From: Schizochytrium sp. TIO01
Taxonomy: Eukaryota; Protista; Bigyra: Labyrinthulomycetes
Direction: 5' to 3'
DNA: 64,000 nt
Assembly (NCBI GenBank): GCA_004764695.1
Contig: SMSO01000034.1
Coordinates: 248,001 to 312,000 of the forward strand
Part shown: positions 23,755 through 64,000 of the stretch, in pieces
How the letters are laid out: each line of letters starts with the position of its first letter
Position numbering within the stretch: position 1 is the first letter of the stretch
Notes under the pieces: generated by a model
Told to the model about the DNA's origin: nothing
Databases searched by the model: none
Seen by the model: the letters and a program-made list of their open reading frames with translations, nothing else
Position numbers and translations under genes: made by a program

Positions 23755-23768
23755 AGTGTAATTCCACC

Positions 23769-23905
23769 GGTCCAGAATAATCAGAAAGAGAATGCAAGAG
23801 TCCAGAGCTGCTCTGGGGAGCTCGATAGCTCCTGTATTTCGTGGTCCAAAATAATCAGAAAGAGAATACAAGAGTCCAGAGCTGCTCTGGGGAGCTCGAT
23901 AGCTC
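23769..23905. repeat. 74-bp-period tandem duplication upstream of the Rdx/IQ gene
   Basis: GGTCCA(G/A)AATAATCAGAAAGAGAAT(G/A)CAAGAGTCCAGAGCTGCTCTGGGGAGCTCGATAGCTC at 23769 and 23843. Confidence 0.9.
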
Positions 23906-27300: not shown

Positions 27301-30300
27301 CCAGTGTTGAGTTCTCCGTGCTGTCGAAGAAAATCGGCACCACAGTGGCTCGCGTCCTCATTATATGATTAGACTCCAAAACAGAACCAACACTTGGCAT
27401 CATGCTGAATCCCATATGTAAGTCATGAGAAACGCACAAAGGCAGTCGTGCATCTGGATAAGGGAGCTCATTATGCTCGATTTTACCATTGAACGCATCA
27501 TTGACGAGGGAGTTTATCGTGAGGTGGTGGCTGAATGGTTGGTGAATTAAATACGAAGGTAAACCTTTTATCTCAATCATTCTGGAACGATTGTATTTAG
27601 CAACCACTTTGGTGAGTAGCGCGTCAGCACGAACAATACCAATGGTAGCACTTGCAACAGCCTGGTTCAACATACGATGGAACACCTCATTTGCATTAGT
27701 ACCTCTATTTCCCACAAGATGATTTTTGCCATTGATTTTAGTCTGTAGAACGAGACCTGGAGGGTCGCTCAAGCAGCCCTTATGAACATGTTCAAAAAGG
27801 CCTGCAATATACTTGTCTAGGCCAACCCCTGTGGCGGTCTTAGATAAAAATAATCCATGCCGAAACCCATTTGGATAGGGTCCGAAATGTTCTACACAAG
27901 CGTTACCAGATCTTGGTTTGCAACGCTCTCGTACGCGATGAAGCAGGTCAGCACTGAGATCCATCTTCGAGTTCATAATATAGTGAGTCTTAAAAACTTC
28001 CATGATGCGCTTATATAGAACCTCTGGTTGTGGGATTCGGGTTTCAACAGCTTGATTGATAAGCCGATCTTTTGTGAAGTTGCTCTTACTCTTATGTTCC
28101 TGTTGAACCTGCTTCACTCGCTTGTGGTCGCGCTGAAGAACAGCGTTTGCTAATGCAGTCATGAATGCAGTACGAGGTGCTCGGCTTTCGTTGCTGCTTT
28201 TCACCATTATTTGCTCCCAACGCTTGAGCCAGTGAAACAAATCGAGCTTGATGGGGACTCCCTTGAAAATTTGTGATAGGCATTTATTTAATTTTCCACA
28301 ACATGTATCTGTCCAAATACATTCAGGCCGGTAATCCCGACCATGCATTTCCTGGCGTAGCTTGACGAATCGTCCTAAAGCTTCTCTTATTTCCCTCTCG
28401 TTCTCACTGTTCGCCAACCCACAATAGAATATAATCTGGTTGTGTTCGTTACTGATTGTGAGTAGGGCTTGATATGGCTGGTATATCCTAAAGGATTTGT
28501 CTTGGTCTTGGAATCGAAGTTTACAGCGCTCGGGAAACCGGAACGTGCAATCGATAGCGATATACCTGGCGCTGTATGACGCAATTTCGCGAAGCAAAGG
28601 TCTTGCCTCTCCTTTAAACTGGTCAATACATAATTCGTCGAGAAATTTGGAGCTTAATCGATATCCGTTGTACTCCATGTCGAAGTTGCCAAAATTTTCA
28701 GGAGCCGTGATTGATTTCTCTTGCGTTTCTTCTTCATTTGAGCACGATGCTGATTGATTTGTCTGGTCGACCTGTTTGCTCGCTTGCTCAGCTGCTTGCT
28801 CGGCAGATTCTTTATTGATCTTGTCTCGGGCAAGTCGCTCGTTGCGCTGCTGGATAACCATTCGAGCATACTCCACGCTCAGTAAGTCCTTTTCTCGGAG
28901 TATCTGGTTGATTGTAGTCTCCAAAAGTTCTTTCCAACCCTCTATAACCCTCGTTCGGTCCCTCTCACGTCGAGCAGTGCTGAGTTGCTTGATTTTCTCG
29001 CCGTTTTTTGTATCTAGGATGTTCTTAAGCTCATGGAAGACATCAACAACTGTAGAGATATTGAGAGCAGACTTTAGGATTTTAATCTTTTTTTCTCCCA
29101 AACTCTTGATTTGCTTTAAATCAAATTCCAGTAATTCACGAGCAGCCGTCTCCTTTCTCAAAACCTCAGCAGAACATTTTTCGGGCTGGAATTGAATCTT
29201 AGATTTGAGCGTATTTGTCGAGTTCACTGCTTGCTTTTGAAAAAAACTTGGGATTGTATTGGGGCCAGCTTCATCGAAGCGCCGAGTGTGTTCTCCTAAG
29301 CTTGATGCATAGTAAAAGTACTCTAGACGATTATGGTTCCGTACCTGAGCCTCATTGAAAGCATCTGCAGCCCACGCGGGACTTTTCAACCACAATTGGC
29401 TGAGACGTTGGCTAACCTCTGTTTCAATCCCGTGGCGTGGGGTTAAGGTCAGGCCAAAGCGTATCCGTACGTCAGCAGGGCACAAACGAAGAACATCCTC
29501 ACTTGTATTGCGAAACTCTTTATTGCACTTTTTACATTTATACTTTCGAGCCACGAGAAACCAATTTGCAGTCGCACCAGCAATCTCTCGGTAATTTGGT
29601 GCCCAGAAGCCATCGTCACCAGAGACGCTGACAAGAGGTTCACCCAAATGCGCTTTTTGGTTGCAGTATGGACATGGCATGCGATTGTTCATCGACGCAT
29701 ACATTTTTGCTGGATGCCATAACCCAACGCTGCGCTGGTGAAAGTACTCTGGTGCAATTTGTTGACCTCTTTTTACTTTCGGCAGTTTGGGTTTCTGGAG
29801 CCAAGTGATTGTCCCATCAGGAACAATGTCGTACAGGGACTGGCATGTTTTGATATCCATTTTATCAAGTGTGTCTTTGCAGCTGTCGATAAATTTTTGT
29901 TGGATTAAGGTGATCGTAGTCTCGCGCTTCTCCTCATCTACATTAGCGCTTTCATTTAAGCCTTCCAGATCCTTTCTGATATCCTCATGACTCAAGGATT
30001 CCTGATCATTGTCCCCGGGAGTGGCTGTCGCCTGGCGAAGCTTGCAACGTGATGAAAATTGCATCATTTTCGTGTTTGATGTTTACCTCGTTGTTGAGTT
30101 TCGCTACCTCAAAGTATCATTTAATATGCCCTGATCATCCAGTGAATATTTCCAAGTCTCTTTGCACATGTATTCGAGCCCAAGGAATACGAGCTTAACC
30201 ACCATCAAAGTCCAGTATTAAATTGCATCAGTGAAACGTCGGCGTAGTATTCGTTGAGGTGGATGTGCCAGTTTACCAGAAATATGTAACATCCTTGTGA

Positions 30301-49483: not shown

Positions 49484-52400
49484 CTACTGTTCTTCAGGTC
49501 GCACCAACTGCAATCTGTGTAGGTCACCTGTACCTTGTAAAAAACAAAAGAAATGGTCTTCGGCTCCTACGTAGCAGGCCACATTTGCCTCAAATGAGAA
49601 GCTTGCCTCGAATCCTCTTTGGACGTGTGGTCCAGAAACTGACCAACCGTTCGGAAATGTGCAGTCCTCCTGACTTAAACCTAAAGGAGGCGAACCTTCA
49701 TATCTTGAAAACTCTATCTTTCCCGAGATATTCCAGTGTTGATCCTTCAAACCAACATGCAACACGACACCTTTGTTGGTAAGCGCAAACAGTCCACTTT
49801 GATCATCTATGTACAACTCTTCAATAACATCTGGGTCATGGATGATAGTTTCCGCGTATTGTTTGTTTGATCGTTTCCAAATCCGAGTGGAATGATCCAG
49901 TGACGCAGATACTATAAAATCAGTGTTTGCTACAATACATTTTATAGCACCTTCCTGAGGTGGCCCAAGACTTCCCATAAAAGTGCCATCTTTACTATTC
50001 CACATACATACGTTACCTCTCTTATCACCGCTTAAAACAAGTTCTTCATGCAGACAGATGCAGCAAACATCACCAGAGTGCCTCTGCTGATTATGTGGAG
50101 ATAAACCCCGAGTGCAATTGTGCGAAACCGAAGTGAAAGCATACTTTGTAACCAAAATATGGCCATCCTCGTAACCAGCAGCTACATATCCTTGCTCATC
50201 AAGTGCCACACTCCATACTTCCTGCTCATACTCATCATATTCTTCAATTTGGCTACCTGAGTCTATTTCCCATAATCTCGCCTTCCCATCCGCTGCCCCA
50301 CTTAAGAGCCATACGTCCCCAGAGGGCATTGTCTGACACGCTAGAGAGTGTATCATCTTCCGTCTTCTGCCCATTGGCAAGTCTTTTGCGACAACATCAG
50401 GAATGCAACCCTCTGCATCATGCCATACAACCAGAGAGCCGTTTGATGTGCCTGCGAAAATCCACTTGCCTGAAACGCAGAATGATGTGCAGCTCAACAT
50501 GCGAGGGTGTTCGTCACAGCTAAATCCTAATGAGTAGGAAAAATCAAGTGTAGCACGGTTCCACACAAGAATCCGAAATTCTTGCGTTGCTACAACGATA
50601 CTGTTTTCGTTAATTCCGCAACCAAAAATTGTTCCCTGAACAGGAAACTTATGCTCACATGTTGAGGAGTCGAGTGATCGCACACACCACGTGGAGTCGT
50701 CGCGAGAAGAGGTCAATAGCACTGTGCTGTCCATTGCCATAGAGGAAACTCTAGATTGGTTATTATGCCACTCATGTTGCTTTGCTAAAGATTTAATGTC
50801 ATATACGTGCAGAAGTGACTCACCGTTACCATCAACTGCACATGCAAACCTTGACTCATGGATTGTGAGAGATGTCAATGGCGAATCGTAAGAATCGGCC
50901 AAAACTTTACGTTCCCTTCCTGTGGCCAGCGAATAAACAACCAATGACCCATTTTCCGAAGCTGCAATCAAAGTATTGTACTTGGAGGATATTACGAGTC
51001 CAGTTATCTTACCCTCGTGCGTACTATCTCTATTTGGAATTGAGTATAATAAAGGCTGCATGGCGTGGTAATCTTCCTCTAACATTTTAAGCTGAGAATA
51101 TTCGTTCTCCATTTTTGCACCTTCAATTAGTGGATGCTCGGATTTAAAATAATGCAATATTTGAGTACATAGCTCTCGGCAATCGTATGTAAGTGCTCTA
51201 GCCGTTCGTCGGAAAAAATTACCCATCTCAGATAAACTTTGGTGGGTATTCGCGTCTGGTTTATCGAAAGCGTCCTCTAACCATCCATAAATAGGCGCCT
51301 TGAGATGAACAATTGCAGTTTTAAGCCACTGGTAGTCGAGAAGATACGTTTCAACATCTTTCAATTGTTCAGCTCTCTTGAGATGAAATAGCACATGCGC
51401 AGCACAGAAGGAGTTTTGTTTTACATTGACCCCGTGAATGCAAGCTTTGGCCAACGTCTCATGGCCTCTTTGTTCACTGCAATTTATGTAATTAAGGAGA
51501 AGTTGCTTCACCCAATGGTCGTAAAATCGAAGAGCTTGATCAGACGAACCTGCGGCAACCCACGAGAATATGCTGTCCGGGAATTCTGCGAGAATCAACT
51601 CTTCGCTTGCCAGATGTAGAATGGAGATGACAGTATCAAATGGAATCGGCTCGCGCGCAACAAGAAGCGCACAGACGAGGTTCACCCGATTTTCACAGTT
51701 TTCACAGTGTGACTGGAACAGAAAATTGTCAAGAACACTCTGGTAGTATTCAGCTGGTTCTGATGATAAGCCTTGGTTGGCCGCGTGATGTACATTTGCT
51801 AGTCTTTCAGCACGAGCCATGTTTCCTTCACTCATTTGGGTAATTTCAGTTATACCTCTGCGAAGTCTTTCTGAATTAACTACACCCTGTTGGTCGAAGA
51901 TATAGCTAACAACATTTTCGATATCCTTTATGTTGCTCTCTGAGGTGGGCATGATTGGTTTAATCAAACATACCTGATCGTTAAGCATGCTATTGGGTTC
52001 ATCGCAAGAGGCAATGACGACTAGCCAAGGTGGCATCTCTTCTTTCCATCTGTGCGTCAATATATCAAGAAGATCCTCGAAGCCTTCAATGCCTGGATAT
52101 AGATTGTCAAAGACCACAATCAAACGTGGAGAAGTATTGGCTTGGGTAGACTGAAAAGGCTTTACAAGAAGTTTCTCAAAGATCTCTTGAAGAGATGTTT
52201 CCTCTATTCCAGCATTAACAAGGGCTTCATCCGCAGCCAGGGCATCTTTGAGATATTCAGGGAACAATTGATGCAACTGCTTCGCAATGCTGAGAAGTGC
52301 AAGCTTTGCACTTCTTAGTTGAATGTCTTCAGAATCGAAAAAATGGGCAGCCGCAACGCAAAATTTGTATCTACCTCCTGAGTCAGATCTCGATAAGCTC

Positions 52401-53200
52401 ATGCTTATTCGGAGGGATTGACGCTGGCTGACCCTTTCCGAGTTCCGAGTTCGATATTTTATAGCGGCGTCAAGATCAAAAAGGTGTCCAATTTGACTTA
52501 GAGCTGCGAGAAACGTGGATTTGCCGATACCATGCTCTCCGATAATGACACACAAGCCAGGTTCATTAGATTGTACCCAAGCCTGTACATCGCTTAGCAA
52601 CCAGACCCTTGTATTGGTTACGTACTTCTTCGCTTTAGCTTTGATTAAACCCAAAAAATTTAGCTGATTGATTCTACGAAGAGCGCTATCGTTGATTGGA
52701 TCAACGCCCCAACAAGATTTTACGTGACTTATTTGATCTGCGATTGAAGTTGCTGCCTCTTGCGCTTCAATGTCAGGGCTTGAAGATCCAATTGTATGTC
52801 GATACAAATGCAGCAAATGGTTAATCATGCTGAACTTCCTCCAATAAAGAGTATTTTGAAATTCTCTGTCTTGGGCTATTGGAATAACTTGCGATGGTCT
52901 GAAGAAAGATTTCATGAGATTGAATTCAAAACGGCAATATGTAAAATCATCCACATCGAGTTTTTCTGCATACTCGCGAGTCAGGAAAATAACCACAAAG
53001 GTACATTCCTGCATCCCATTTTTGATCATATTCTCCAAGGCACCCCCAATGAGGCTAGTTTGGTCCCTCCAAACGTTGATTCCATGATCATTTTCAAGAG
53101 CTGTTTCCACGGCCTCCACAAAAGGCTGATGTTCACGGGGCTTATATTCCGAGCCCCATGCATATGAGAAGAAGACCATGTCTGGTTCATCTGACAACAT
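49484..53200 (-). CDS. TIR-NACHT/STAND-WD40 NLR-like protein (paralog A)
   Basis: TIR: VFFSYAW...VWRD...VVIFLTREY...YCRFEF. Walker A GEHGIGKST; Walker B LIVVFDNL. APAF1/NWD-like helical region LLDYQWLK. Many WD40 repeats (LLSGAADGKARLWE, IVSASLDHSTRIWK). First ATG 53200; the track start 53239 is TTG. Confidence 0.92.
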   Translation of the reverse strand: MLSDEPDMVFFSYAWGSEYKPREHQPFVEAVETALENDHGINVWRDQTSLIGGALENMIKNGMQECTFVVIFLTREYAEKLDVDDFTYCRFEFNLMKSFFRPSQVIPIAQDREFQNTLYWRKFSMINHLLHLYRHTIGSSSPDIEAQEAATSIADQISHVKSCWGVDPINDSALRRINQLNFLGLIKAKAKKYVTNTRVWLLSDVQAWVQSNEPGLCVIIGEHGIGKSTFLAALSQIGHLFDLDAAIKYRTRNSERVSQRQSLRISMSLSRSDSGGRYKFCVAAAHFFDSEDIQLRSAKLALLSIAKQLHQLFPEYLKDALAADEALVNAGIEETSLQEIFEKLLVKPFQSTQANTSPRLIVVFDNLYPGIEGFEDLLDILTHRWKEEMPPWLVVIASCDEPNSMLNDQVCLIKPIMPTSESNIKDIENVVSYIFDQQGVVNSERLRRGITEITQMSEGNMARAERLANVHHAANQGLSSEPAEYYQSVLDNFLFQSHCENCENRVNLVCALLVAREPIPFDTVISILHLASEELILAEFPDSIFSWVAAGSSDQALRFYDHWVKQLLLNYINCSEQRGHETLAKACIHGVNVKQNSFCAAHVLFHLKRAEQLKDVETYLLDYQWLKTAIVHLKAPIYGWLEDAFDKPDANTHQSLSEMGNFFRRTARALTYDCRELCTQILHYFKSEHPLIEGAKMENEYSQLKMLEEDYHAMQPLLYSIPNRDSTHEGKITGLVISSKYNTLIAASENGSLVVYSLATGRERKVLADSYDSPLTSLTIHESRFACAVDGNGESLLHVYDIKSLAKQHEWHNNQSRVSSMAMDSTVLLTSSRDDSTWCVRSLDSSTCEHKFPVQGTIFGCGINENSIVVATQEFRILVWNRATLDFSYSLGFSCDEHPRMLSCTSFCVSGKWIFAGTSNGSLVVWHDAEGCIPDVVAKDLPMGRRRKMIHSLACQTMPSGDVWLLSGAADGKARLWEIDSGSQIEEYDEYEQEVWSVALDEQGYVAAGYEDGHILVTKYAFTSVSHNCTRGLSPHNQQRHSGDVCCICLHEELVLSGDKRGNVCMWNSKDGTFMGSLGPPQEGAIKCIVANTDFIVSASLDHSTRIWKRSNKQYAETIIHDPDVIEELYIDDQSGLFALTNKGVVLHVGLKDQHWNISGKIEFSRYEGSPPLGLSQEDCTFPNGWSVSGPHVQRGFEASFSFEANVACYVGAEDHFFCFLQGTGDLHRLQLVRPEEQ

Positions 53201-54256
53201 AATCGTTGTTAGGAGAGGTGTCGGAAAGTTCTGCACCAATGCACTCTGTAGTTGAACACAGTTTGACGCGCTAAATCAAGAAGAAAACTGTTCTCTTGAC
53301 ACTCTTCTTCAACGATTTGCCTGCTGGCTTGGCGGGCGAGTACTTCGTGACGGTCGCTATTTCACTATCGCCTACAGCAGGGGAGCAGGGAGGCAAACAT
53401 AGATAGCACGAAACGTCAGGACTGTCAAATCACGTGGGGGGAGCGCGTTATGCGCAGCAAGGGAGGTATATATCTATGAGCGTCGATGACACATCAAGAA
53501 GCGTGTTTACTTTTGCCATTTTTCAGAGTTTATGATGTTGCGATTTATTATTTATTATTTATTAGTTAATTAGAAACCCATAAAATGTAAACTAAAAACT
53601 AATTACTAATTACTAAAAAGTCGAGATTAAAATAAACTTTGACCTTCAAATTTGCTAATTCAAATTTAATTCTACAAAACAAACAAATATGTATAACTTT
53701 AAAACATTAATAAAGTTATAATTTTTTAATTTTTTTACCAAGTAGGAGTAGGGAATGTCGTGCACAAAAGGAAAAGAAAAGAAGAATAGACACCACTCCT
53801 ATTGTTGGGTAGAAGATCAAATCAAGCATATTACCTAGTTGACGTAAAGCCAATCATCTAAAGTATCCAGCGTTGATAAGAAATGATGGGGATGTGTAGT
53901 TAATTTTTGTCTGCTGATCCACTGTGCGAACAAATGCGCCAACGAAGTAGTATGGCTTGTTTATTCGATAAAGAACATGATATTGGCTGTTTTAGTATCT
54001 TTTAACGATGTCATTCAATGGGAATTCAGGGATCAAGTTAAGTCATCATGGAAAGCAGCTTCGGTAATAGAATCCTCCATTTGGAAAGGTTGAGTTCTCA
54101 CTTTGCTTAACCATATAATGGAATGCCTCTATCCTTGGGGGCCGTGGCAAGTTCAAATTTGAGAATGGACTGGAAACCTTCAACATCATTATGTTTATCT
54201 CAACAACGAAGGTCCTTCTTACCAATATAATTTCTGCGACCTTGGTTTCTACTCTT

Positions 54257-56338
54257 TTATTCCTCATCGTCAGACTCACTATCATCATCGGCGTCGTCAT
54301 CACTCCATTCCAATGGAGAATGCACAATAACATTCAAGCCATTCAATGAGTGCCTTTCTGCATTAATTGGCCGAAATGTTTGTGAGTCATGGCGCGACGG
54401 AGACGCTGATATCCCTTTGGAGCAGCTACAGTCACCGAGGCAGCCTCCTTCCTGCCCTCCACAGCTACATTGTGGATCGCACAGACACATCTCACGTTTT
54501 ATGTATTGCTCTTTAAGGCGCTTTCGCATCTCCTTCCGGAAGACAAGCTCATTCACAGCCTCATCCACATCTGATTTCTTACTTCTCACTATAGATCTGA
54601 CCCTGTCAAGCATCCAACGACTGACACCTCGCGCCTTTTCTGCATCCACTTTGTCTTCACCTTGGAGCGCTTCATTCAATGGTTGTTTTGATGTAAACGG
54701 CAAAAATCTTCTCTTAGGTTTCACGTTGCTCGAAACCGATGGCGGAAAAAAAGTAGAACTTGGAATTGCCTCGGCCAAGTCCTTAGTTAAAGTAAGGGTG
54801 TCAATCGCCTTATTTACCCTTTCTAGCAAGGCAGCAGCAGCAGCGTTGCTAAATTCCTCAATGCTTTCACGAAGGCGGCGCAAGACATATTTGATAAGTT
54901 CAATACTAACTTTCACCTCTGAGTAGCTTGCTACTTTACGATACTTTGTCGCGTGCTTCAGGGTATCTTCAAGAATTTCCACTGATGTTGCACGGGCTTC
55001 AACCATCGAACTAGAGGATTGGAGCGACCTCTGTGCCAGAAGCACACCATCCCGTACCTTTTCACGAGTTCGAATAGCACGTGTCTTTGGTGCACGATGC
55101 TTGCGCTTGGAACTAAGTGTGCGGTCTAAAACGAGATCAAGGCTAAGCTCATTAGAGCGCTCCATGTCTGCTCCCCGTCTTCTTCGAGGCCTCTCAGTGC
55201 ACAGCCTGGCTGTCAAGAAATGGTACGCAGGGGTCGGTGCTTCGCACGTTGAGTTGAGAAGAATCGGCACAGTAAACGTCCGAAGAGCGCCAAATTGTCC
55301 CTTTGGCAGAATCAGTTTGCAGGAGTCTTCATTTAAACTCTCCTTGATAAAGTCAGCCGGAAGTCTGTCCTCTAAACGCGCTTGGTCAATGGTAACCTCA
55401 TCCCTCCGTTCTTCTGGGACAATGATGTAAAGGGTGTTTAGCAAGTTGGGTCCTTTAACCTCGTCAGCATCTTCAATCTTTATATTCTCTTGGCCAGGCA
55501 CAGACATATAACCCCCCAAAACTTTTGTAAGTCTCTCAAAAAAAGCCTTTGCAAAAGTGTCACCATAAAGACCGATCGGGTATGCCCGAAGTTCAATCTG
55601 CATGAAAGTAAGGCTAGCCAAAGGGACAGGGTCACTATCCTCTTCTCCCTCTCCATCATCTTCTTCTCCGGGTGATCTGGCCGATGCATCTTCTGCTCGG
55701 GTATTTAAGTTTCGTAGATGCTTTGCCGCCAACTTCATTCTTTTGGCCGTTTGCAGGGTTTCTTCCGCGTCAAACACCTGACCATCACTCGTCACATGAA
55801 TCTCAAGCCTGGTTGAAGTGGCGATGTCGCTGTTTTTGGTCTTGTTGGTGAAGGCAACCTCTGCTTCACGAAGTTTGATGAACCCAGTGTTCATGTTGGT
55901 TCCACCGTAGATTCCTTGAGAGTTGACATTTGCGATCAATGCTTCTCTAGATGCTTTAGTAAGAAGTATAAATCCATTTGTGATATCCTCGGCCATAGAC
56001 CCAAAGCAGATTACCGCGCAGTAGATTGTTTGTTCATGCAAATCCAACGCCTCAATCCAAGTTTGAAACTGTTGCTTTGCTTGTACAGACTTTTCTCCGG
56101 CCATGCTGCCACTGAAGTCCATGATCCATGCTACAGCGTAGGAATCCCGAACGGAATATTTTGCGATTTCATAGGAGAAGCCAATCTCAAGTTCTTCTGG
56201 GCTCATTCCAGTTTGCTTGGGGTAGCTTATTTCAAACCTTGGGAATACATCATTCGAAGCATCTAGCGTGGTTTCTTTGTTACTCCTACGTGTGAATGAA
56301 TTCACTAGAGAAATCCGCCCAACCGTGCTGCGACTCAT
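54257..56338 (-). CDS. von Willebrand factor A (vWA) domain protein, paralog 1
   Basis: Intact MIDAS: IMDFSGSM, GGTNM, VTSDGQ. Followed by beta-rich and helical regions and a Cys-rich tail. Start uncertain: ATG 56338 favoured; the track start 56494 lies in a poly-A run. Confidence 0.88.
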   Translation of the reverse strand: MSRSTVGRISLVNSFTRRSNKETTLDASNDVFPRFEISYPKQTGMSPEELEIGFSYEIAKYSVRDSYAVAWIMDFSGSMAGEKSVQAKQQFQTWIEALDLHEQTIYCAVICFGSMAEDITNGFILLTKASREALIANVNSQGIYGGTNMNTGFIKLREAEVAFTNKTKNSDIATSTRLEIHVTSDGQVFDAEETLQTAKRMKLAAKHLRNLNTRAEDASARSPGEEDDGEGEEDSDPVPLASLTFMQIELRAYPIGLYGDTFAKAFFERLTKVLGGYMSVPGQENIKIEDADEVKGPNLLNTLYIIVPEERRDEVTIDQARLEDRLPADFIKESLNEDSCKLILPKGQFGALRTFTVPILLNSTCEAPTPAYHFLTARLCTERPRRRRGADMERSNELSLDLVLDRTLSSKRKHRAPKTRAIRTREKVRDGVLLAQRSLQSSSSMVEARATSVEILEDTLKHATKYRKVASYSEVKVSIELIKYVLRRLRESIEEFSNAAAAALLERVNKAIDTLTLTKDLAEAIPSSTFFPPSVSSNVKPKRRFLPFTSKQPLNEALQGEDKVDAEKARGVSRWMLDRVRSIVRSKKSDVDEAVNELVFRKEMRKRLKEQYIKREMCLCDPQCSCGGQEGGCLGDCSCSKGISASPSRHDSQTFRPINAERHSLNGLNVIVHSPLEWSDDDADDDSESDDEE

Positions 56339-56713
56339 TGCGCTGGTACTACAAAGCAAATATCTACGATTGCTAAGGGTTGTTTTTTGGTTTTGCTGTA
56401 CCATCGCCTTCTCAATTTTTTTCATTGGAAAAAGGATGCTTCGCCACAATGCTTCTTTACTTTTTTTTCTTTTTTTTTTTTCTTTTTTTTTCAAATTTTA
56501 AAGAGAGAGGATTAAAAGGCCAAAATAAAAGTTGTTTAATTAAAAATCCCATTCTTCAAAAGACATTTCAAAATCACTAATACGACTCTTTTACCTTAGC
56601 TTTTAACTTTAGTTAATTAAAATTTTTCTAAACTAAAAGATGGAGGTGTTATTTCATAGGACACGTATTATCATTCTTAAGTATTCTTTTTTTGATGAAA
56701 ATAAGAATCGTCT

Positions 56714-56793
56714 ATAAAAAAGTGTTTCTTTCAAGAACGTTTTCTGTGAGAGCATAAAAAAGTGTTTCTTTCAAGAACGTTTTCTGTGAGAGC
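56714..56793. repeat. Perfect 40-bp tandem duplication in the divergent vWA1/vWA2 spacer
   Basis: ATAAAAAAGTGTTTCTTTCAAGAACGTTTTCTGTGAGAGC at 56714 and 56754. Confidence 0.95.
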
Positions 56794-57995
56794 TCTCTAG
56801 AGGCACGTGAAAAGAGTATATGTTAGTGTACAAGGAGGAGTACACACCAAAGAGCTAGGCAAGCTCTCCAAGCCAGGAAATCTTGAAGGTTCTACAACTG
56901 CACGTATTCACGAGACATGCTTGTAAGAGAAAATCACGCAAGTTGAACTTGTTCTGGATGCGCAGGCGGCTGCGTACAACTGCGATGGCCCATTCTAAAA
57001 GAACAGTAGCGAACCCAATTGATAATAACAAACCTCTATTTACAAGAGACCAAATCCATGAGAAGATCCAAAGTGTACTTTAATTAACAAATAGTCAGTG
57101 CGCAATCAACCAAAACAACCAGGGCTCAGGTAGTGCACACCATTAGCCTTGGCTCACTAATGAGACATGTTTACTTTTCATCCTTCGACTTGGTTGGAAA
57201 CTCAGGTCAAAATAATCAGTTATTGTAGGGGCTTGGCTTCGATGAACGTGGTAATGGTAGGAGGCTTTCGCTAACTGGGTTTTGGCGGGCATTTTTAAAG
57301 GACGTAGTTACAGTAGAGGGTGGGAGTGATAAAGAAAGAACAAGTTGTGCACCATTCATCCTAAATCTCCTTTGAATTTGACACTCGCCCCAAATATACA
57401 ACCATAGGCTACTTTTGAGAATACGTTTTCGTGAGGAAGTGCAAGTCGCACATTTTGAGAGCTATCAGAATAGGACGGTAATCATATAGTAGTAGAACGG
57501 ATCAGATTATATGAAAGGTTGACGCTATTCCTTATTTGGAAATGGTTTCACATACCTAGGTATTGTTCAGCACTGCACATAAAATTCTTATTATTATATA
57601 CCAAATAAATACTTAAAAGATGTTTTCACTTCACACTTCAGAGTTTTTAATTTAAAAGTGAGTAAATATTTTTTTTAAACAAAATGTTACAAAAGAATGG
57701 AAACAACTTTACAGCTACACGTTTGAACATGAACATTGCACGTTGCTATAGCACTCTCACTAGTTATCTCTTACTAGTCCTATTTCTTGGATTAAGTAAA
57801 AGCATTTCGTTCATTGCAGCAGAGTCTCATCATATACCATAGTAAGTAAACTAATTAGATATTGGGTTGAAAAATGATTTATTTAAACCTGAAAAGATTC
57901 TTTAAAGGCTGCTCAATGATTTTTCTGCCACTGCTTCGCTGGCAAATCTAGAATACGAAACTAATACAGTTGCCTGGTTTAAAGCGCTAGGAATC

Positions 57996-59819
57996 ATGGA
58001 GCTAGATTTCAAGCTCGAGCATGATCAGCTAACGACGAGCCCTGAAGAGTCCTTTCTCTTGGGAACTATCACCACTGGTGAAGAGAAGGTTGATGGTGCC
58101 GTTTTGCTGGTGCTTCTCGACACTAGTCGCTCGATGGACCATCGCCAACCAGAGCTCGAGACAGTGGACGACTTCTATCGAAGCAGAATTGAAGTAATCA
58201 AGGTAGCTTTGTTTGAGCTTCTTGATGAAGCAAATGAGAATGACCTGGTCGGACTCATTACCTTCGATAATGATGCCGAGACAATCTTTGAAATTGAACA
58301 TGCTACAGCAGAAAATAAAAATTATTGGAGAGAAGCCATCAATGAAAACATTGAGTTTGCCGGGCAAACAAACCTTGAAAAAGGCATCAGATCTGCCGTG
58401 AATGAGCTTGAGTACGTGGAGTCTTTTCTTCAGAAAGACTCAGCGGTGATAGTTATTATTTGTGATGGCTATATCACATCAGGGGTTGGATATCCACGTT
58501 CCAGAAATCAAGTTAACGTTGCTCACCAGAATCTTATTAGCTTGATCAGGAGACAACTAGAACAACTCGAAAACATGAATGTTTCTATTCACTCCTGTGG
58601 CATTGGAAATGAATTCGATAGACGATTCCTTCAGAGGATATCATCAGACTGTGGATCTGGGGGGCGCTTTCAAGGATTTGTTTTACCTGAAGAGCAGTTG
58701 AAGACCTCTAGTGGGTTTTTATCTACATTGCTTCAAAACGAGAGGCGGACGCTCAAGGGCAAAACCGGGGTATACTACACCCTTACTGCGGAACCCGGTA
58801 CCACATTGGCAATCCGTACAGCAACTGAAGCGTATGATCCGAGCTGCTTGGAAATTGAAGAACTTGAAACTGGCAAGTATAAGATTACACCCAAGAAGCA
58901 GTTTGTACATAGGAAGGTACTATTTACAATGGTTGTTTTGCTGGAGGAAGTAGTAACACCAAATCAAAATCATAAAGTTGCTCGATTTTACTCGAGTACA
59001 GATAGCCATACAAAATATGTTTTTGTTGATCGATGCGACACAAGAACCCAGAATACGAAGCGCAATATAAGGCGAAGAGCTGTTGAAAAGCAGAATAGTT
59101 TAGCTACTGAACTGGAAAATCTGAGCAAGCAAACAGACCAGGAACAGGTTGAAAACATCGATGAGTCGCATAGAAAGTTGATTGATTTTAAACAGAGTCT
59201 TCAAAGTGTTTTCAACCTTGCGTGTACTTTTGGTCAAGATCCACCTTCCACTAACCAGCTTCTACAGATTTCTTTGATTCTGGAAAAGGTTTTGAAAGCT
59301 GTTACAGATGCTATGAGTGAAATTCAAACAGGCATTACATCATTAAGGCAATCGGTTTTGGGGTTCCGCCTTGGATCATTATTTGCAACGTTTGCAGATA
59401 TCCTTCGAACACAGATGCCGTCCACCTTCGTTTTTGCGTACACCGAGGACAGTGAAGAGGACGTGGAAGTTAGTCTGAGGAAGCAAATATCGGATGCTGA
59501 AAAGGAGATCCAAAGATTGGAGGAGCTGGGTCGCGTTCATGGTTTCGATGAAAACCAGTTCAGTATCGCCGAATGCCATGCACGTTTAAAAAGAATCGAG
59601 GAGCGCAAAATGGAGCTTCAAAAAGAGCTAAGAGAAATTGGGCTTCTAAGAGAACCATCATCGCAAATATCCCGGAGAAGTTCTTCAGGAAGTCAACCCA
59701 GACGAAGCATCTCAAGGTTCTTTCCACGTATCTTGCGACGTCAAGAAGAGCCTTCTACAAGATCAAGTGCAGACGGCTCTTCTCGAACAAGCTCAGATTC
59801 ATTTGATGCTCAAGAATAA
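57996..59819 (+). CDS. von Willebrand factor A (vWA) domain protein, paralog 2
   Basis: Intact MIDAS: LLDTSRSM, GQTNLEKG, IICDGY. Also SIHSCGIGNEFD, a C-terminal coiled coil and an S/R-rich tail. Confidence 0.9.
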   Translation: MELDFKLEHDQLTTSPEESFLLGTITTGEEKVDGAVLLVLLDTSRSMDHRQPELETVDDFYRSRIEVIKVALFELLDEANENDLVGLITFDNDAETIFEIEHATAENKNYWREAINENIEFAGQTNLEKGIRSAVNELEYVESFLQKDSAVIVIICDGYITSGVGYPRSRNQVNVAHQNLISLIRRQLEQLENMNVSIHSCGIGNEFDRRFLQRISSDCGSGGRFQGFVLPEEQLKTSSGFLSTLLQNERRTLKGKTGVYYTLTAEPGTTLAIRTATEAYDPSCLEIEELETGKYKITPKKQFVHRKVLFTMVVLLEEVVTPNQNHKVARFYSSTDSHTKYVFVDRCDTRTQNTKRNIRRRAVEKQNSLATELENLSKQTDQEQVENIDESHRKLIDFKQSLQSVFNLACTFGQDPPSTNQLLQISLILEKVLKAVTDAMSEIQTGITSLRQSVLGFRLGSLFATFADILRTQMPSTFVFAYTEDSEEDVEVSLRKQISDAEKEIQRLEELGRVHGFDENQFSIAECHARLKRIEERKMELQKELREIGLLREPSSQISRRSSSGSQPRRSISRFFPRILRRQEEPSTRSSADGSSRTSSDSFDAQE

Positions 59820-59914
59820 CCAAATACTAAAACTCAGTCACTGTACTTCTCTTCATCGAAGAAAGTTTGAAAACCATACTAAGCAAAACCTTGAAAAGCT
59901 AAACAAATACGAAG

Positions 59915-62900
59915 TTAATGAGAGCTGTTCTTCTCAATTTTTAACATAGATAGAGTACTACTTCCTGCAACAAAACCGTAAAAGCTTGTCTCTGATGCTG
60001 TCCAGTGGCTTATATTGTCATCAAAAGTAAAGCTTGAAGTCTCAGGATATTGCACGTGCCCGCCCTGGACTTGCCATTTTCCAGGCCGATCTCTCTTCCA
60101 ATCACATTTGGAGACTGTCGCTTGATCAATAGGTTCAATGGATTTCCTATCTTGGGCTATGTGCCAGCCACGTTTCACCCCATATTGGGTTTTTGCCAGC
60201 AAAATGTCCTCTGACAGGCAGAGATCAGTGGCTATGAAGGTCAGTTTTCGCGAAGCAAGCTCTGCAAGAGAGTTCAAATCCCATATTTTGAGGACTTTGT
60301 CACTAGATGCAGTTGCAACCCAGTCAGTCGCAACAACGATCGAGGTGATTTTGTCTTTATGAGCATCGACGATACACATCTCTGCTTTTTCTTCTCCTTT
60401 GGAACGCTCCCAGACTCGTATGCCTCCTTTGCAATCCCCACTCAAAATATACTCAGGAGCTAGTGCAAGGCACGAGGATGGTGCTGCCGCTGCATCTGGT
60501 TGTACGTGACGACTGATATTGTCATCATCTTGTTCATCTCTACCCAAGGGCAACATAGAAAGCCGTCCTACTCGAATCTGGCCATTCTCGTATCCAATAA
60601 CACTTCGCTCCTTTGGACTTAGCGTAACACTCGTTACAGCTGAGTTACTTTTTATGAGTCCAGTGCACTTGATTGCTTCAAGATCTGTAAGGTCCCAGCT
60701 GCAAACAGTTCCATCTTCTGATCCACTTAGTAGGAAAAGTTTCGTTCTAAATTTACGAATAGAGAGGGATGAAATACGACCTAAATGTAGACGCTCGCCT
60801 TCCTGTGAAATGCGATGAGCAGAAGCAGTCTGGTTCGACGATTTGCTTGAAGTATCATCACTCTGGTCCTCGATTTTCCACACAGAAATTTCTCCTTTCT
60901 CATTCCCCACAATGATTAAACTTTCACCATACATAACAAATGCAGTACACACCGCAGATACCAAATCTTGCAACACCCTTGTGCAGCATTCCGAATCACT
61001 CTGGTGAAGGTCCCAGCTAAGAATCTGAAAATCTTCGGTGGCTACAAATATCGACTTTAAAGTCAGTGCTACACCAATAATAATTTTTTTTGTATCAAAT
61101 TCTCTTCGGGGCTTGTGGTCCTCACTTGAGTGATCCCATAGAGTTACACAGCCGTCTAATGATCCACTCACCAGATATTTTGAATCCATTGCCATAGATG
61201 TGATATCCATGTCATGCCTGCTAGGAAACTCCTTCTGGTGATATTTTGAATCCATTGCCATACACGTGATATCCATGTCGTGCCTGCTAGGAAATTCCTT
61301 CTGGTCTAATTCTGTTGGTGTGTAAACACGGATTAGCCGACCTTCTTCACCGCTAAACGCACATGCAAATGCGACTTCCCCATTGCTTTCTGAAGAACAC
61401 ATAGCCAAGCATGTTGGTATCATATCGATGTCAAGGTGGAAGAGTTTCTCACCAGTGTAGATATTCCACGCATTGACCTGCTCGTCATCTTCTGATAAGG
61501 AAATAAAAAGGTTGGCCGCAGCTGCAAGACTCGTTACATCATCGTGATGCTTTCCGCTTAAAGTGTACAGAAAGAAGCCCTGGGTGGTTGAATTAACTGG
61601 CATAAGTTCATCATAGGAAAGGCTGTGCCGGCCTTCTGCACCTGTGCATAAAGGATGCTCTTTCGACAGACGACAAAGAATTTGGGTCCGAAGTTGACGA
61701 GAGTCGAAAATAAGTGCGTCAGTATTTTGCACAAGAAAATCAATTGTTGTGATCGCAGCAGATTGTTCCTTTGGAGCAACAGAGCGATATTGTTCAAGGT
61801 CTTTGTTCCACAGTGTGACATCTACACCCTGTTGCACAATCGCCCCATAGATCTTGTCATAATCTACTAGGTATCTGGCGAGATCTTCCAATCGATTTGC
61901 CTCAAGCAGATGGTATATTGCATGTTTAGCGCTAAAGAGACACTCTGATACCCTATCTTGACAAACCTCAGCTAAAAGCGCATGGCCCTTTGCCAAAATT
62001 GGCCTTAGGTCCTCCCGTAAAATACTTTTGATTCGCTCGAAGTCTCCCAATTTGACCGTCTCAAGTCTTGTGCGTTCCAAAATTCCTTGAGAGGAATCAA
62101 TAACAACTTGTATGTCTTCTGTATATGCCACATGTAGAAGAGTTTTTACAATATCAAATGGAATTGCCTCGCGTGCTACACACAAAGCACACAAGAAGTC
62201 CTTGCGCTTATTCCCGTCCGCACTGTTTTCATTTAGAAAATTATCCCTTAAACATGACTCGTAGATTTCCAGAGGTGATCGTGAATCTTCTGGTTGGTTT
62301 GGTAGAGATGTCGTATCAAAGTCATACTGAGTAACAAAGTTGCTGGCTTCACCCATGTTCCCCCCACTTTTTCGCAGTGTCAAGGCTATCCATTCGTCAA
62401 GGGGCTGGGTATTGGGATATTTCTCTTCGAGTCTAATTTTTGCGACCTGTTTGACATCTTGGTAATTGTTGGGTAATTGCGGGTCTAGAAGATGAACTAG
62501 AGAATTTGACAAGATATCTTGTCTCTGACTAGACAGAATGAGGCCGACCCATTTGGGCAGCCTTTCGTTCCAATCATTTAAAAGTCGTTGAAGATCATCT
62601 TTTCCTTCAGTGATGAAGTCAAAGCCATCAATAATGACCACAACATTGCGTTCACTTTTGACGCTTCCTAGTGGCTTAACAATAAATTCAGTGAAGATAA
62701 CATCTAGTGTGACGCTCTCTAGCTCGGAAAAGTTTGTGAATGTTTCTGATACCGCTGTTATTTGATTACAGCAAGTTTGCACAGACTTCTGTAGTTGTTT
62801 GGCAATGCTTAGCAAAACAAATTTCGCAGACTTATTTGAGGTACGCCCATGGGACTCTGCTTCTTCTGGGACAAAAAATGCTGCAGCGACTAGAATCGTT

Positions 62901-63751
62901 GATGCAGACTTTGAGAATATTCCCTTCATCTTCTGGGAGAGGCGACGTAACGATAGTCGCCTGGATGCGTGTTGGGAGTCACGTTCCCAGTTCGAAAATG
63001 CTTTTGGATCTAGACATTGCGCAATTTTGTCTGGATTGAAGAATTCGCCGATGCCGCAGAGGGCAGCCAAGAACACAGATTTCCCCATTCCTTTATCTCC
63101 CGAGATGAGTAGAGAGTTTGAAAAAGGTTTTGAAGCCCATGTTTTAACAGCATTAAAGAGCCACGTTCGAGTATCCTCGATAAATTTGTAATAAAGGTCC
63201 TTAATTCTGGCCAAGTTTTTGGATTCATCCAACCCTACCAGAAGTGAGGCTCCAGCATCACTTTTAATACCTGCTTCGCGTTCCTTCATAATTGCATCGA
63301 AAATAAATCTCGCGGCTTCTCTGGCGTTGTTTTGATTTTCCTCAGCTATAGAATGGTACAACAATGGCGCCAATCGAAGGAGCCTGAGGCCCCAATTTTT
63401 TTGATCATGCATATTCGGATTTTGCACAACAGGAAAGACGGTTTTTTGCGAGTGATGTGTCAGCATCACATCAAATTCAAATGAACAATTTTGAAAGCTA
63501 CCTTCGTCATCCAACTTTTGTTGGTATTCCGTTGTGATGAAAACTACCATGTACTCGCTGTTTACGATGCCCTTGGCAATTTGTATATCAAGGCCGCGGC
63601 CAACCATTAGGTCGTTCATATCTTGCCAAACATCAAGGTTTAGCTTGCTAAGTTCTTCATAAACCATGCAGACAAACTTCTGACGTTCCCTGTTTGGTCC
63701 CCACGCATAGGATAAGAATATGTCCTTCGCAAAGGCTTCCGTTCGTGGCAT
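59915..63751 (-). CDS. TIR-NACHT/STAND-WD40 NLR-like protein (paralog B)
   Basis: TIR: DIFLSYAW...VWQD...VVFITTEY...NCSFEF. Walker A GDKGMGKSV; Walker B VVVIIDGFD. WD40 repeats (LVSGSLDGCVTLWD, LLSGSEDGTVCSWD, VATASSDKVLKIWD). Confidence 0.92.
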   Translation of the reverse strand: MPRTEAFAKDIFLSYAWGPNRERQKFVCMVYEELSKLNLDVWQDMNDLMVGRGLDIQIAKGIVNSEYMVVFITTEYQQKLDDEGSFQNCSFEFDVMLTHHSQKTVFPVVQNPNMHDQKNWGLRLLRLAPLLYHSIAEENQNNAREAARFIFDAIMKEREAGIKSDAGASLLVGLDESKNLARIKDLYYKFIEDTRTWLFNAVKTWASKPFSNSLLISGDKGMGKSVFLAALCGIGEFFNPDKIAQCLDPKAFSNWERDSQHASRRLSLRRLSQKMKGIFSKSASTILVAAAFFVPEEAESHGRTSNKSAKFVLLSIAKQLQKSVQTCCNQITAVSETFTNFSELESVTLDVIFTEFIVKPLGSVKSERNVVVIIDGFDFITEGKDDLQRLLNDWNERLPKWVGLILSSQRQDILSNSLVHLLDPQLPNNYQDVKQVAKIRLEEKYPNTQPLDEWIALTLRKSGGNMGEASNFVTQYDFDTTSLPNQPEDSRSPLEIYESCLRDNFLNENSADGNKRKDFLCALCVAREAIPFDIVKTLLHVAYTEDIQVVIDSSQGILERTRLETVKLGDFERIKSILREDLRPILAKGHALLAEVCQDRVSECLFSAKHAIYHLLEANRLEDLARYLVDYDKIYGAIVQQGVDVTLWNKDLEQYRSVAPKEQSAAITTIDFLVQNTDALIFDSRQLRTQILCRLSKEHPLCTGAEGRHSLSYDELMPVNSTTQGFFLYTLSGKHHDDVTSLAAAANLFISLSEDDEQVNAWNIYTGEKLFHLDIDMIPTCLAMCSSESNGEVAFACAFSGEEGRLIRVYTPTELDQKEFPSRHDMDITCMAMDSKYHQKEFPSRHDMDITSMAMDSKYLVSGSLDGCVTLWDHSSEDHKPRREFDTKKIIIGVALTLKSIFVATEDFQILSWDLHQSDSECCTRVLQDLVSAVCTAFVMYGESLIIVGNEKGEISVWKIEDQSDDTSSKSSNQTASAHRISQEGERLHLGRISSLSIRKFRTKLFLLSGSEDGTVCSWDLTDLEAIKCTGLIKSNSAVTSVTLSPKERSVIGYENGQIRVGRLSMLPLGRDEQDDDNISRHVQPDAAAAPSSCLALAPEYILSGDCKGGIRVWERSKGEEKAEMCIVDAHKDKITSIVVATDWVATASSDKVLKIWDLNSLAELASRKLTFIATDLCLSEDILLAKTQYGVKRGWHIAQDRKSIEPIDQATVSKCDWKRDRPGKWQVQGGHVQYPETSSFTFDDNISHWTASETSFYGFVAGSSTLSMLKIEKNSSH
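61174..61305 (-). repeat. In-frame 66-bp tandem duplication inside the WD40 region of NLR paralog B
   Basis: 61174-61239 vs 61240-61305 match at 62/66, encoding QKEFPSRHDMDIT(C/S)MAMDSKY twice. Confidence 0.95.
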
Positions 63752-64000
63752 ATTTACAGCCTTGCTTTAGCAGATATGATCTCGTCAATTCCCGGACTGG
63801 GCTCGCCTGTCTTCAAGGAGTTCTGCTGCAGCTTTGCACTTGCGTGAGGTATTTCAACCCAAGTAAAAGTTTTGACAGACTACTAATAGAATAAGTATAG
63901 AACTTTTGAAATAGCATTCAAAACGAGTAGTTAGTTTACGATATTACTGTGTAATTATAGGGTAGACACGATGGAGGAAGTCTGCAAAAGTTGTAGTGTA

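Follow-up and report, generated by a model that had tools for sequence, protein, structure and literature searches.

Introduction

Receptors of the NLR type, which are built around STAND NTPases, are well studied in plants, animals and fungi and, by now, in bacteria, whereas little is known about them in free-living protists. Here we describe a gene cluster of Schizochytrium sp. TIO01 in which genes for three predicted receptors of this kind, with the domain architecture TIR-NACHT-WD40 (NLR-A, NLR-B and NLR-C), are interleaved with genes for soluble proteins of two families, denoted vWA1 and vWA2, with von Willebrand factor A (vWA) domains that are putative in the former family and clear in the latter. 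The window analyzed is a stretch of 64,000 nucleotides, namely, positions 248001-312000 of contig C33 in a genome of 64 Mb in 37 contigs (a window coordinate is the C33 coordinate minus 248000). The cluster occupies approximately 42 kb (C33:297.5-339 kb), of which the first 14 kb lie inside the window and 27 kb past its end, and consists of three NLR genes together with eight copies or remnants from the two vWA families. Of the latter, two are vWA1 genes and six belong to vWA2, where four copies are intact, one is a pseudogene and one a fragment; the nine intact open reading frames (ORFs) encode proteins of 607-1278 amino acids (aa).

This is a lineage-restricted birth-and-death cluster that was shaped by nested block duplications involving both NLR and vWA genes; afterwards, genes were lost or converted, and the proteins diverged fast. 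The explanation that we favor for the locus as a whole combines this mode of evolution with receptor action of the type known for STAND proteins and a partnership between the vWA proteins and the receptors, and we assign it a probability of about 0.45. The locus offers a concrete case of what may be an immune or allorecognition module in a protist, in which NLRs and two private vWA families were duplicated, lost and diversified together. Thraustochytrids are culturable organisms.

Comparison with the closest described systems

The NACHT-WD40 NLRs of fungi (HET-E/HET-D/NWD2; Dyrka et al. 2014, PMC4986451) consist of an N-terminal effector, a NACHT-clade NTPase and a WD40 sensor and form lineage-specific expansions of clustered, rapidly diverging paralogs. 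All these features recur in the cluster described here, with the differences that a bacterial-type TIR takes the place of the HET, HeLo or Goodbye domain as effector, that the host is a stramenopile and that vWA genes are interleaved with the NLR genes. Plant TIR-NLRs, likewise, are TIR-STAND-repeat receptors encoded in tandem birth-and-death clusters, whereas the proteins analyzed here contain NACHT instead of NB-ARC and WD40 instead of LRR. Also in plants, the vWA-containing copine BON1 restrains the TIR-NLR SNC1, and an initial annotation of the window, made from the sequence alone, invoked this pair as an analogy. Two N-terminal C2 domains are the hallmark of copines, and no C2 match was detected in any vWA1 or vWA2 protein in Pfam searches; because these domains are missing, the cluster proteins are not copines. 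Furthermore, BON1 and SNC1 are not known to be neighboring genes.

The sole precedent that we found for the union of vWA, a TIR-type NADase, an NPHP3/TEP1-type NACHT and WD40 is TEP1, a single chain with the architecture TROVE-vWA-TeTIR-NACHT-WD40 that includes a TIR-like NADase and an NPHP3-type NACHT (bioRxiv 10.64898/2026.09.21.753143); both NLRs encoded in the window match the NPHP3_N model as well. In contrast to TEP1, the vWA domains here reside in separate genes, the TIR is a canonical TIR_2 rather than DUF4062/TeTIR, and the genome lacks TROVE, so that the cluster is not a member of the TEP1/TeTIR group; in addition, nothing in the cluster proteins points to RNA binding.

In the bacterial MoxR-vWA ternary conflict systems, vWA is fused or linked to STAND and TIR (Kaur, Burroughs, Iyer and Aravind 2020, PMC7159879). 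The genomic coupling of vWA with STAND NTPases and TIR effectors and the recurrent duplication and diversification are shared with the present locus, and the initial annotation drew on this likeness. However, according to the ORF map and the Pfam tables, there is neither a MoxR AAA+ ATPase nor a VMAP or inactive-STAND component; the vWA proteins have no C-terminal effector recognized in Pfam, NCBIfam or PADLOC; and, in place of an operon, there are monocistronic eukaryotic genes that point in both directions. The STAND proteins of the cluster do not qualify as inactive STANDs because their Walker motifs are intact. Given that MoxR, VMAP or inactive STAND, and an effector-fused vWA are all missing, the cluster is not a ternary system of this type. 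In its mode of action, the locus would most resemble the birth-and-death NLR clusters of fungi or plants, with a candidate vWA component in addition. The initial annotation considered a linked NLR-vWA pair to be undescribed in stramenopiles, and indeed we found no paper on such a pair in thraustochytrids or other stramenopiles, and none on NACHT, TIR-NLR or vWA genes of thraustochytrids like this one.

Three predicted TIR-NACHT-WD40 receptors

The ORF map confirmed the positions and strands of the four long ORFs reported for the end of the window, two of which encode NLR-A and NLR-B. NLR-A (window 49484-53200, minus strand; C33 297484-301200) is a single ORF of 1238 aa from the first ATG (open frame 49484-53239). 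Its TIR domain (aa 9-111; 52868-53176, minus strand) scores 44 bits with TIR_2 against a cut-off of 28, the NACHT-type P-loop NTPase (aa 197-368; 52097-52612, minus strand) scores 38.7 bits with NPHP3_N against 24.8, and the WD40 beta-propeller region (49757-51028, minus strand) scores 56 bits with PF00400 against 27, along with matches to many propeller models. NLR-B (window 59915-63751, minus strand; C33 307915-311751), defined by its ORF and Pfam matches, comprises 1278 aa, with a TIR domain (aa 11-115; 63407-63721, minus strand; TIR_2, 44.9 bits), a NACHT-type NTPase (aa ~194-411; 62519-63172, minus strand; NPHP3_N, 39.5 bits against 24.8) and a WD40 region (60191-61285, minus strand; PF00400, 51 bits against 27). 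Thus, all three domains that the initial annotation recognized in both large ORFs exceed the Pfam cut-offs, whereas the NACHT model proper, PF05729, scores 18.7 bits with NLR-B, under its cut-off of 26.7. The third receptor, NLR-C (C33 331583-335326, minus strand), is intact and lies past the window end.

Both NLRs of the window carry the GxxGxGKS and hhhhD motifs; the Walker A motif is GEHGIGKS in NLR-A and GDKGMGKS in NLR-B, and the Walker B motif of NLR-A is VVFD. As proposed in the initial annotation, and in agreement with the peptide pairs cited there, all of which are present, NLR-A and NLR-B are diverged paralogs that align over the full length (28% identity, E 2e-106). NLR-C is much closer to NLR-B, with 90% protein identity. 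At the start of the WD40 region, NLR-B contains a 66-base-pair (bp) direct tandem duplication (window 61174-61305, 94% identity; C33 309174-309239 repeated at 309240-309305) that translates into an additional 22-aa repeat absent from NLR-C. The propeller model Beta-prop_TEP1_C gives 44.5 bits with NLR-B, against a cut-off of 32, and 22.1 bits with NLR-A, but propeller models cross-match widely.

Among proteins with solved structures, the best relatives of the NLR TIR domains are the bacterial TIRs AbTIR and PdTIR (PDB matches 7uwg, 8g83 and 3h16), and the PADLOC matches of the NLR-B TIR are ThsB, bSEFIR and PDC-S66 TIR. A glutamate that is invariant across all three NLRs (E92 in NLR-B) occurs within a C-x-F-E-F motif at the expected distance and is the putative counterpart of the catalytic residue of TIR NADases; this equivalence is drawn from the position of the motif because the alignments with the solved structures end at residue 79.

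Judged by these features, the three proteins are intracellular receptors of the NLR type, with a bacterial-type TIR, a WD40 propeller and an NTPase of the NACHT clade whose Walker motifs are intact, and they combine the three architectural elements of NACHT-clade STAND receptors, namely, the NTPase, the N-terminal effector and the C-terminal repeat sensor. By what is known of the STAND family, binding of a ligand by the WD40 propeller would release NTP-dependent oligomerization; the oligomer would bring the TIR domains together, so that NAD+ is consumed or a nucleotide signal is made; and this TIR output could culminate in cell death or arrest.

When genomes of bacteria and archaea were scanned with the NLR alignment, no relatives were detected. 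A word-based search with NLR-B returned only weak, generic NACHT and WD40 matches, and given that it did not return the query itself, it is uninformative on NLR orthologs. Elsewhere in the genome, there are many copies of an ORF of ~850-880 aa with ~29-37% identity to the NLR-A TIR (e.g., C7:37441-37854, C30:12326-12730 and C8:69333-69746), several of them near contig ends; the two that were scanned combine COR-A, of the ROCO type, with a C-terminal TIR.

Two families of vWA proteins and their relatives

The other two long ORFs at the end of the window encode a clear vWA protein, vWA2a, and a divergent, putative one, vWA1a. vWA2a (window 57996-59819, plus strand; C33 305996-307819) is a protein of 607 aa in which a vWA domain is followed by a beta region, long helices and a tail that is basic and rich in Ser. 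The vWA domain (aa 37-220; 58104-58655, plus strand), delineated by Pfam and alignment, matches VWA_2 at 5e-14 and contains the residues of the metal ion-dependent adhesion site (MIDAS), D42-x-S44-x-S46, T125 and D157. vWA1a (window 54257-56425, minus strand; C33 302257-304425) comprises 722 aa from the first ATG; the frame is open to 56494, and the start is uncertain, another possible ATG being located at 56206. Its vWA core (55763-56140, minus strand) includes the MIDAS residues DFSGS, GGT and SDG, which are invariant between vWA1a and its paralog vWA1b (C33 315712-317556, minus strand, past the window end; 30% identity, E 6e-51). The N-terminal SPEE motif and the DxSxS...T...D MIDAS residues that the initial annotation noticed in both vWA ORFs of the window are, indeed, present, although for the vWA1 family the domain assignment falls short of the Pfam thresholds: vWA1a matches VWA at 3e-4 with 21.5 bits, under the cut-off of 23.8, and vWA1b matches no vWA model.

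The further suggestion that vWA1 and vWA2 are paralogs is not supported. BLASTP found nothing between the two families, and hhalign overlaid the MIDAS motifs without significance (probability 0.2-0.3, E 0.2-0.3). What they have in common is the vWA superfamily, the succession of vWA domain, beta-rich region and long helices, and a C-terminal tail that is basic and RRxS-like; at the sequence level, they are apparently two unrelated families. A basic, Ser-rich RRxS-like motif is found near the C-terminus of vWA1a, vWA1b and vWA2a-d, as well as in one relative from Hondaea (P0009), and the C-terminus of vWA1a (window 54257-54500) additionally contains a stretch rich in Cys (CLCDPQCSCGGQEGGCLGDCSCSKG) as well as an acidic tail, neither of which occurs in vWA1b.

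The remaining vWA2 genes lie past the window end, all on the plus strand: vWA2b (C33 321839-323857), vWA2c (324641-326641), vWA2d (327449-329470), the pseudogene vWA2e (330027-331109; N-terminus truncated, at least two stops) and the fragment vWA2f (337700-338905). The MIDAS is intact in vWA2a and vWA2b, whereas vWA2c and vWA2d have lost two of its residues (D to A in DxSxS, and T to E). No signal peptide, transmembrane or hydrophobic segment was found in the vWA1 or vWA2 proteins, so that these proteins are probably cytosolic, as are the NLRs. The C-terminal halves of both families have no match in Pfam, NCBIfam, PADLOC or the PDB. The AlphaFold2 models have a pLDDT of 43 for vWA2a and 33 for vWA1a, the latter unusable, and Foldseek recognizes the vWA fold for vWA2a only.

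Within the genome, every copy that we found of this NLR subfamily, of vWA1 and of vWA2 belongs to the C33 cluster (whole-genome search with each protein, and tblastn for remnants). The other vWA proteins of the genome that were sampled are adhesin-like, with PAN and PT repeats, or linked to AAA_5 or Agenet. Outside the genome, an exhaustive HMMER search of 1.8 billion representatives with the vWA2 alignment yielded only two real relatives, GBG30635.1 and GBG30637.1 from the thraustochytrid Hondaea fermentalgiana, which align with vWA2 over the full length and are encoded on the same 57-kb contig; the accession numbering suggests that they are separated by one gene. For vWA1, no relative was found outside this genome. 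Word-based searches with vWA2a and with the vWA1 alignment returned the query itself or paralogs only, and a metagenome scan with the vWA2 alignment gave only four generic matches to the vWA core. In a vWA2 tree with the Hondaea proteins and outgroups, the deep nodes are unresolved, and each family has only two to three old lineages.

The remaining HMMER matches of vWA2 are weak, confined to the vWA core and scattered among plants, fungi, a dinoflagellate, giant viruses and bacteria, and it is here that a viral connection has to be considered. Conceivably, vWA1 and vWA2 were captured from, or mimic, vWA proteins of Nucleocytoviricota, such that the NLRs recognize the viral proteins and the host copies serve as baits or decoys. 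The protein-atlas clusters nearest to vWA1a and vWA2a are the same, Nucleocytoviricota VWFA proteins of similar length (0.94-0.95; leads only), weak HMMER and Foldseek matches include vWA proteins of Yasminevirus, Klosneuvirus and Pithovirus, and large DNA viruses are known to infect Aurantiochytrium, with one thraustochytrid carrying a persistent mirusvirus infection (PMC12606086). Nevertheless, the viral sequence matches are limited to the generic vWA core, at E 1e-7 or weaker, and proteins of plants, fungi and dinoflagellates reach equal scores; no relative turned up when viral contigs were scanned twice; the structural model behind the Foldseek matches has a pLDDT of 43; and no viral hallmark genes are present in the cluster. 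Taken together, we consider this virus-related bait scheme improbable.

Duplication, loss and gene conversion

The arrangement of the genes retains clear traces of the history of the cluster. Twice, a vWA1 gene is located upstream of an NLR gene on the same strand (vWA1a with NLR-A, and vWA1b with NLR-B), and twice, a vWA2 gene of the a type converges on the 3' end of an NLR gene (vWA2a with NLR-B, and vWA2e with NLR-C). In the window, the convergent stop codons of vWA2a and NLR-B are separated by a spacer of 95 bp (window 59820-59914, from the ORF coordinates, with the ends at 59819 and 59915), exactly as in the initial annotation. Furthermore, NLR-B and NLR-C each have a homologous segment lying past them (318274-318903, matching 337076-337694 of C33 with 73% identity), after which comes vWA2 sequence of the b type. 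This repeated geometry implies that multi-gene blocks including both NLR and vWA genes were copied.

By sequence comparison, vWA1a+NLR-A and vWA1b+NLR-B are old, co-diverged pairs (30% and 28% identity, respectively), and the second duplicated pair is vWA2a-NLR-B versus the vWA2e pseudogene-NLR-C. In the latter case, vWA2a and vWA2e share 34% identity over residues 128-490 (E 1e-46), whereas vWA2e matches vWA2b-d only at ~1e-6; vWA2a is 33-35% identical to vWA2b-d in the vWA domain. The proposal that an NLR and a vWA gene were duplicated as a unit therefore stands insofar as blocks containing both were copied, but the partners in the old duplication are vWA1a with NLR-A and vWA1b with NLR-B, not vWA1 and vWA2 as counterparts of each other.

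More recent events are superimposed on this pattern. The genes vWA2b, vWA2c and vWA2d are the products of a recent triplication (81-86% identity). The DNA match between NLR-B and NLR-C extends exactly from the stop codon through 1.8 kb upstream, and neither the 3' spacer nor vWA2 is part of it. Two histories would account for this: the arrival of a recent copy next to vWA2e, or gene conversion that overwrote an NLR already present there. There are no ORFs of at least 150 aa other than the NLR and vWA genes in C33:297-339 kb, and no transposase or repeat termini were seen within the cluster.

Selection and divergence

The NLR-B and NLR-C genes differ by 134 substitutions with zero stops (P = 0.003 under random substitution), and all four coding indels are multiples of 3, whereas the 16 indels in the upstream 1.8 kb mostly are not; identity is 96.4% in the coding sequence and 88.8% in the upstream 1.8 kb. 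Because there are no stops and all coding indels, unlike most of those upstream, are in frame, the reading frames are kept by selection. The ratio of nonsynonymous to synonymous substitution rates (dN/dS) is nevertheless high, 0.88 for NLR-B/C and 0.68-1.08 among vWA2b-d. In vWA2b-d, the coding sequences are 91-93% identical and the spacers ~98-99%, with a patchy, mosaic divergence; conversion by diverged paralogs, diversifying selection or a combination of the two would fit this pattern.

These values bear on the possibility that the cluster is decaying or non-functional DNA, with the ORFs being remnants of a once-active family or mobile element. dN/dS near 1 in the recent copies, the presence of a pseudogene and a fragment, and the lack of homologs in large databases except for those from Hondaea would all be compatible with decay. 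We nevertheless consider it highly improbable, because the long ORFs are intact, the indels in the recent copies are in frame only, the probability of no stop is as low as given above, the catalytic and MIDAS motifs are kept across paralogs with 28-30% identity, and signs of a mobile element were not seen.

Linkage and a possible partnership between vWA proteins and NLRs

A functional partnership of the vWA proteins with the receptors is a conjectural part of the explanation that we favor, and we lean toward it only tentatively, at somewhat short of an even chance. The inference is based on the exclusive presence of both vWA families in the NLR cluster, the orientations kept in old duplicates and the TEP1 precedent. 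Under this scheme, the vWA proteins would be cytosolic binding partners that use the MIDAS face and function as adaptors or as guardees monitored by the NLRs, the MIDAS-dead vWA2c and vWA2d might be decoys or regulators, and the partnership would hold at the level of families rather than as strict cognate pairs. The only known parallel to such a vWA-NLR partnership is the fused TEP1 architecture.

The alternative, that we take seriously even if we do not lean toward it, is neighborhood without partnership, whereby three fast-evolving, dispensable families share a duplication-prone stretch, the NLRs act alone and the vWA proteins are unrelated to them. Genome-wide counts (33 VWA_2 and 16 NPHP3_N matches in 64 Mb) provide the framework for weighing the two possibilities. 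Outside the cluster, there are 13 further NPHP3_N loci and ~25 further VWA_2 matches, and the nearest such pair is more than 400 kb apart; in other words, the other NACHT loci have no vWA neighbors and the other VWA_2 matches no NACHT neighbors, so that the NACHT-vWA linkage is peculiar to the C33 cluster. By a rough estimate from the genome-wide counts, a single adjacency of NACHT and vWA somewhere in the genome is only mildly unlikely by chance (p ~0.07). The repetition of this adjacency within the cluster is not independent evidence because block duplication copies neighbors whether or not they interact, and we estimate that it goes back to roughly one founding adjacency, with the same p of ~0.07.

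Several further observations, together with these counts, weigh against a partnership or against the scheme of which it is a part. The C unit of the cluster combines an intact NLR-C with a deleted vWA1 copy, the dead vWA2e and the vWA2f fragment; because NLR-C persists with only such wrecks alongside, one-to-one cognate pairing, as envisaged in the initial annotation, is not maintained. The recent NLR-B/C tract, furthermore, halts exactly at the NLR stop codon and leaves out vWA2. Fusions of vWA with TIR or NACHT are not found among seven other sampled vWA proteins, and there is no match to TROVE anywhere in the genome. The catalytic glutamate of the TIR domains is assigned by motif position alone. 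Sequencing runs that were guessed to be RNA contain 22-63% of the words of window 54200-60100, which agrees with both vWA genes being transcribed but is only a hint. In Hondaea, the vWA2 homologs are clustered and no NLR homolog surfaced, a weak point given that the search missed even the query itself. A second tandem cluster, with five vWA matches (C31:3327514-3358737), has no STAND gene nearby, which also fits neighborhood without partnership; the one ORF scanned in it (1350 aa) is adhesin-like, with PAN, PT-repeat and vWA regions.

Mere neighborhood, on the other hand, does not readily account for the fact that two vWA families without sequence relationship to each other, absent elsewhere in the genome, are both found inside the sole cluster of this NLR subfamily, nor for the conservation of orientation in duplicates as old as 28-35% identity, with all the proteins being cytosolic and fast-evolving. 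A still more specific version of the partnership, namely, a two-component immune module in which MIDAS-containing vWA proteins and their MIDAS-dead decoys are ligand-capturing or guarded partners of the NLRs, in a 'split TEP1-like' arrangement that evolves by block duplication in thraustochytrids and is possibly directed against large DNA viruses, is doubtful at present. If it is true, NLRs would have entered into a novel type of partnership in a lineage other than plants, animals and fungi. If, instead, the vWA genes are mere neighbors, the locus still illustrates cleanly how the NLR genes of a stramenopile evolve by birth and death.

Other features of the cluster and its surroundings

A recurrent feature of the upstream regions is the word TAAACTAA(TT), which is found with NLR-A, NLR-B/C, vWA1a, vWA1b and vWA2a. 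Within the 64-kb window, TAAACTAA has four matches (53588-53604, 56629-56636, 57847-57856 and 63931-63938), every one of them in intergenic DNA of the cluster and the last in the region upstream of NLR-B (window 63752-64000), which continues off the window; the other sites, upstream of NLR-B/C and vWA1b, are past the window end. The 9-mer is present in four of the six upstream regions, compared with 0.01 in mononucleotide shuffles, and the 10-mer shows no genome-wide enrichment (229 occurrences versus 333 for a control word). Because the test was post hoc and used mononucleotide shuffles, the word is only a lead, and a shared cis-element is a possible reading of it.

On the left, the cluster borders on an amidophosphoribosyltransferase-like gene. 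Elsewhere in the window, at 24533-30067 (minus strand), an 1844-aa ORF combines DUF6729 with a C48 peptidase domain of the Ulp1 type, a pairing suggestive of a transposon, and the 1380-aa ORF beside it (window 19729-23871) has no Pfam match. Finally, many contigs have full-length 18S rRNA genes near their ends (12 of 125 candidates were scored), for example, at C7:18211-19997, C35:16608-18392, C5:4047-5831 and C4:34610-36397, an arrangement that matches the subtelomeric rDNA in the Aurantiochytrium limacinum assembly (bioRxiv 10.1101/2023.06.15.545109).

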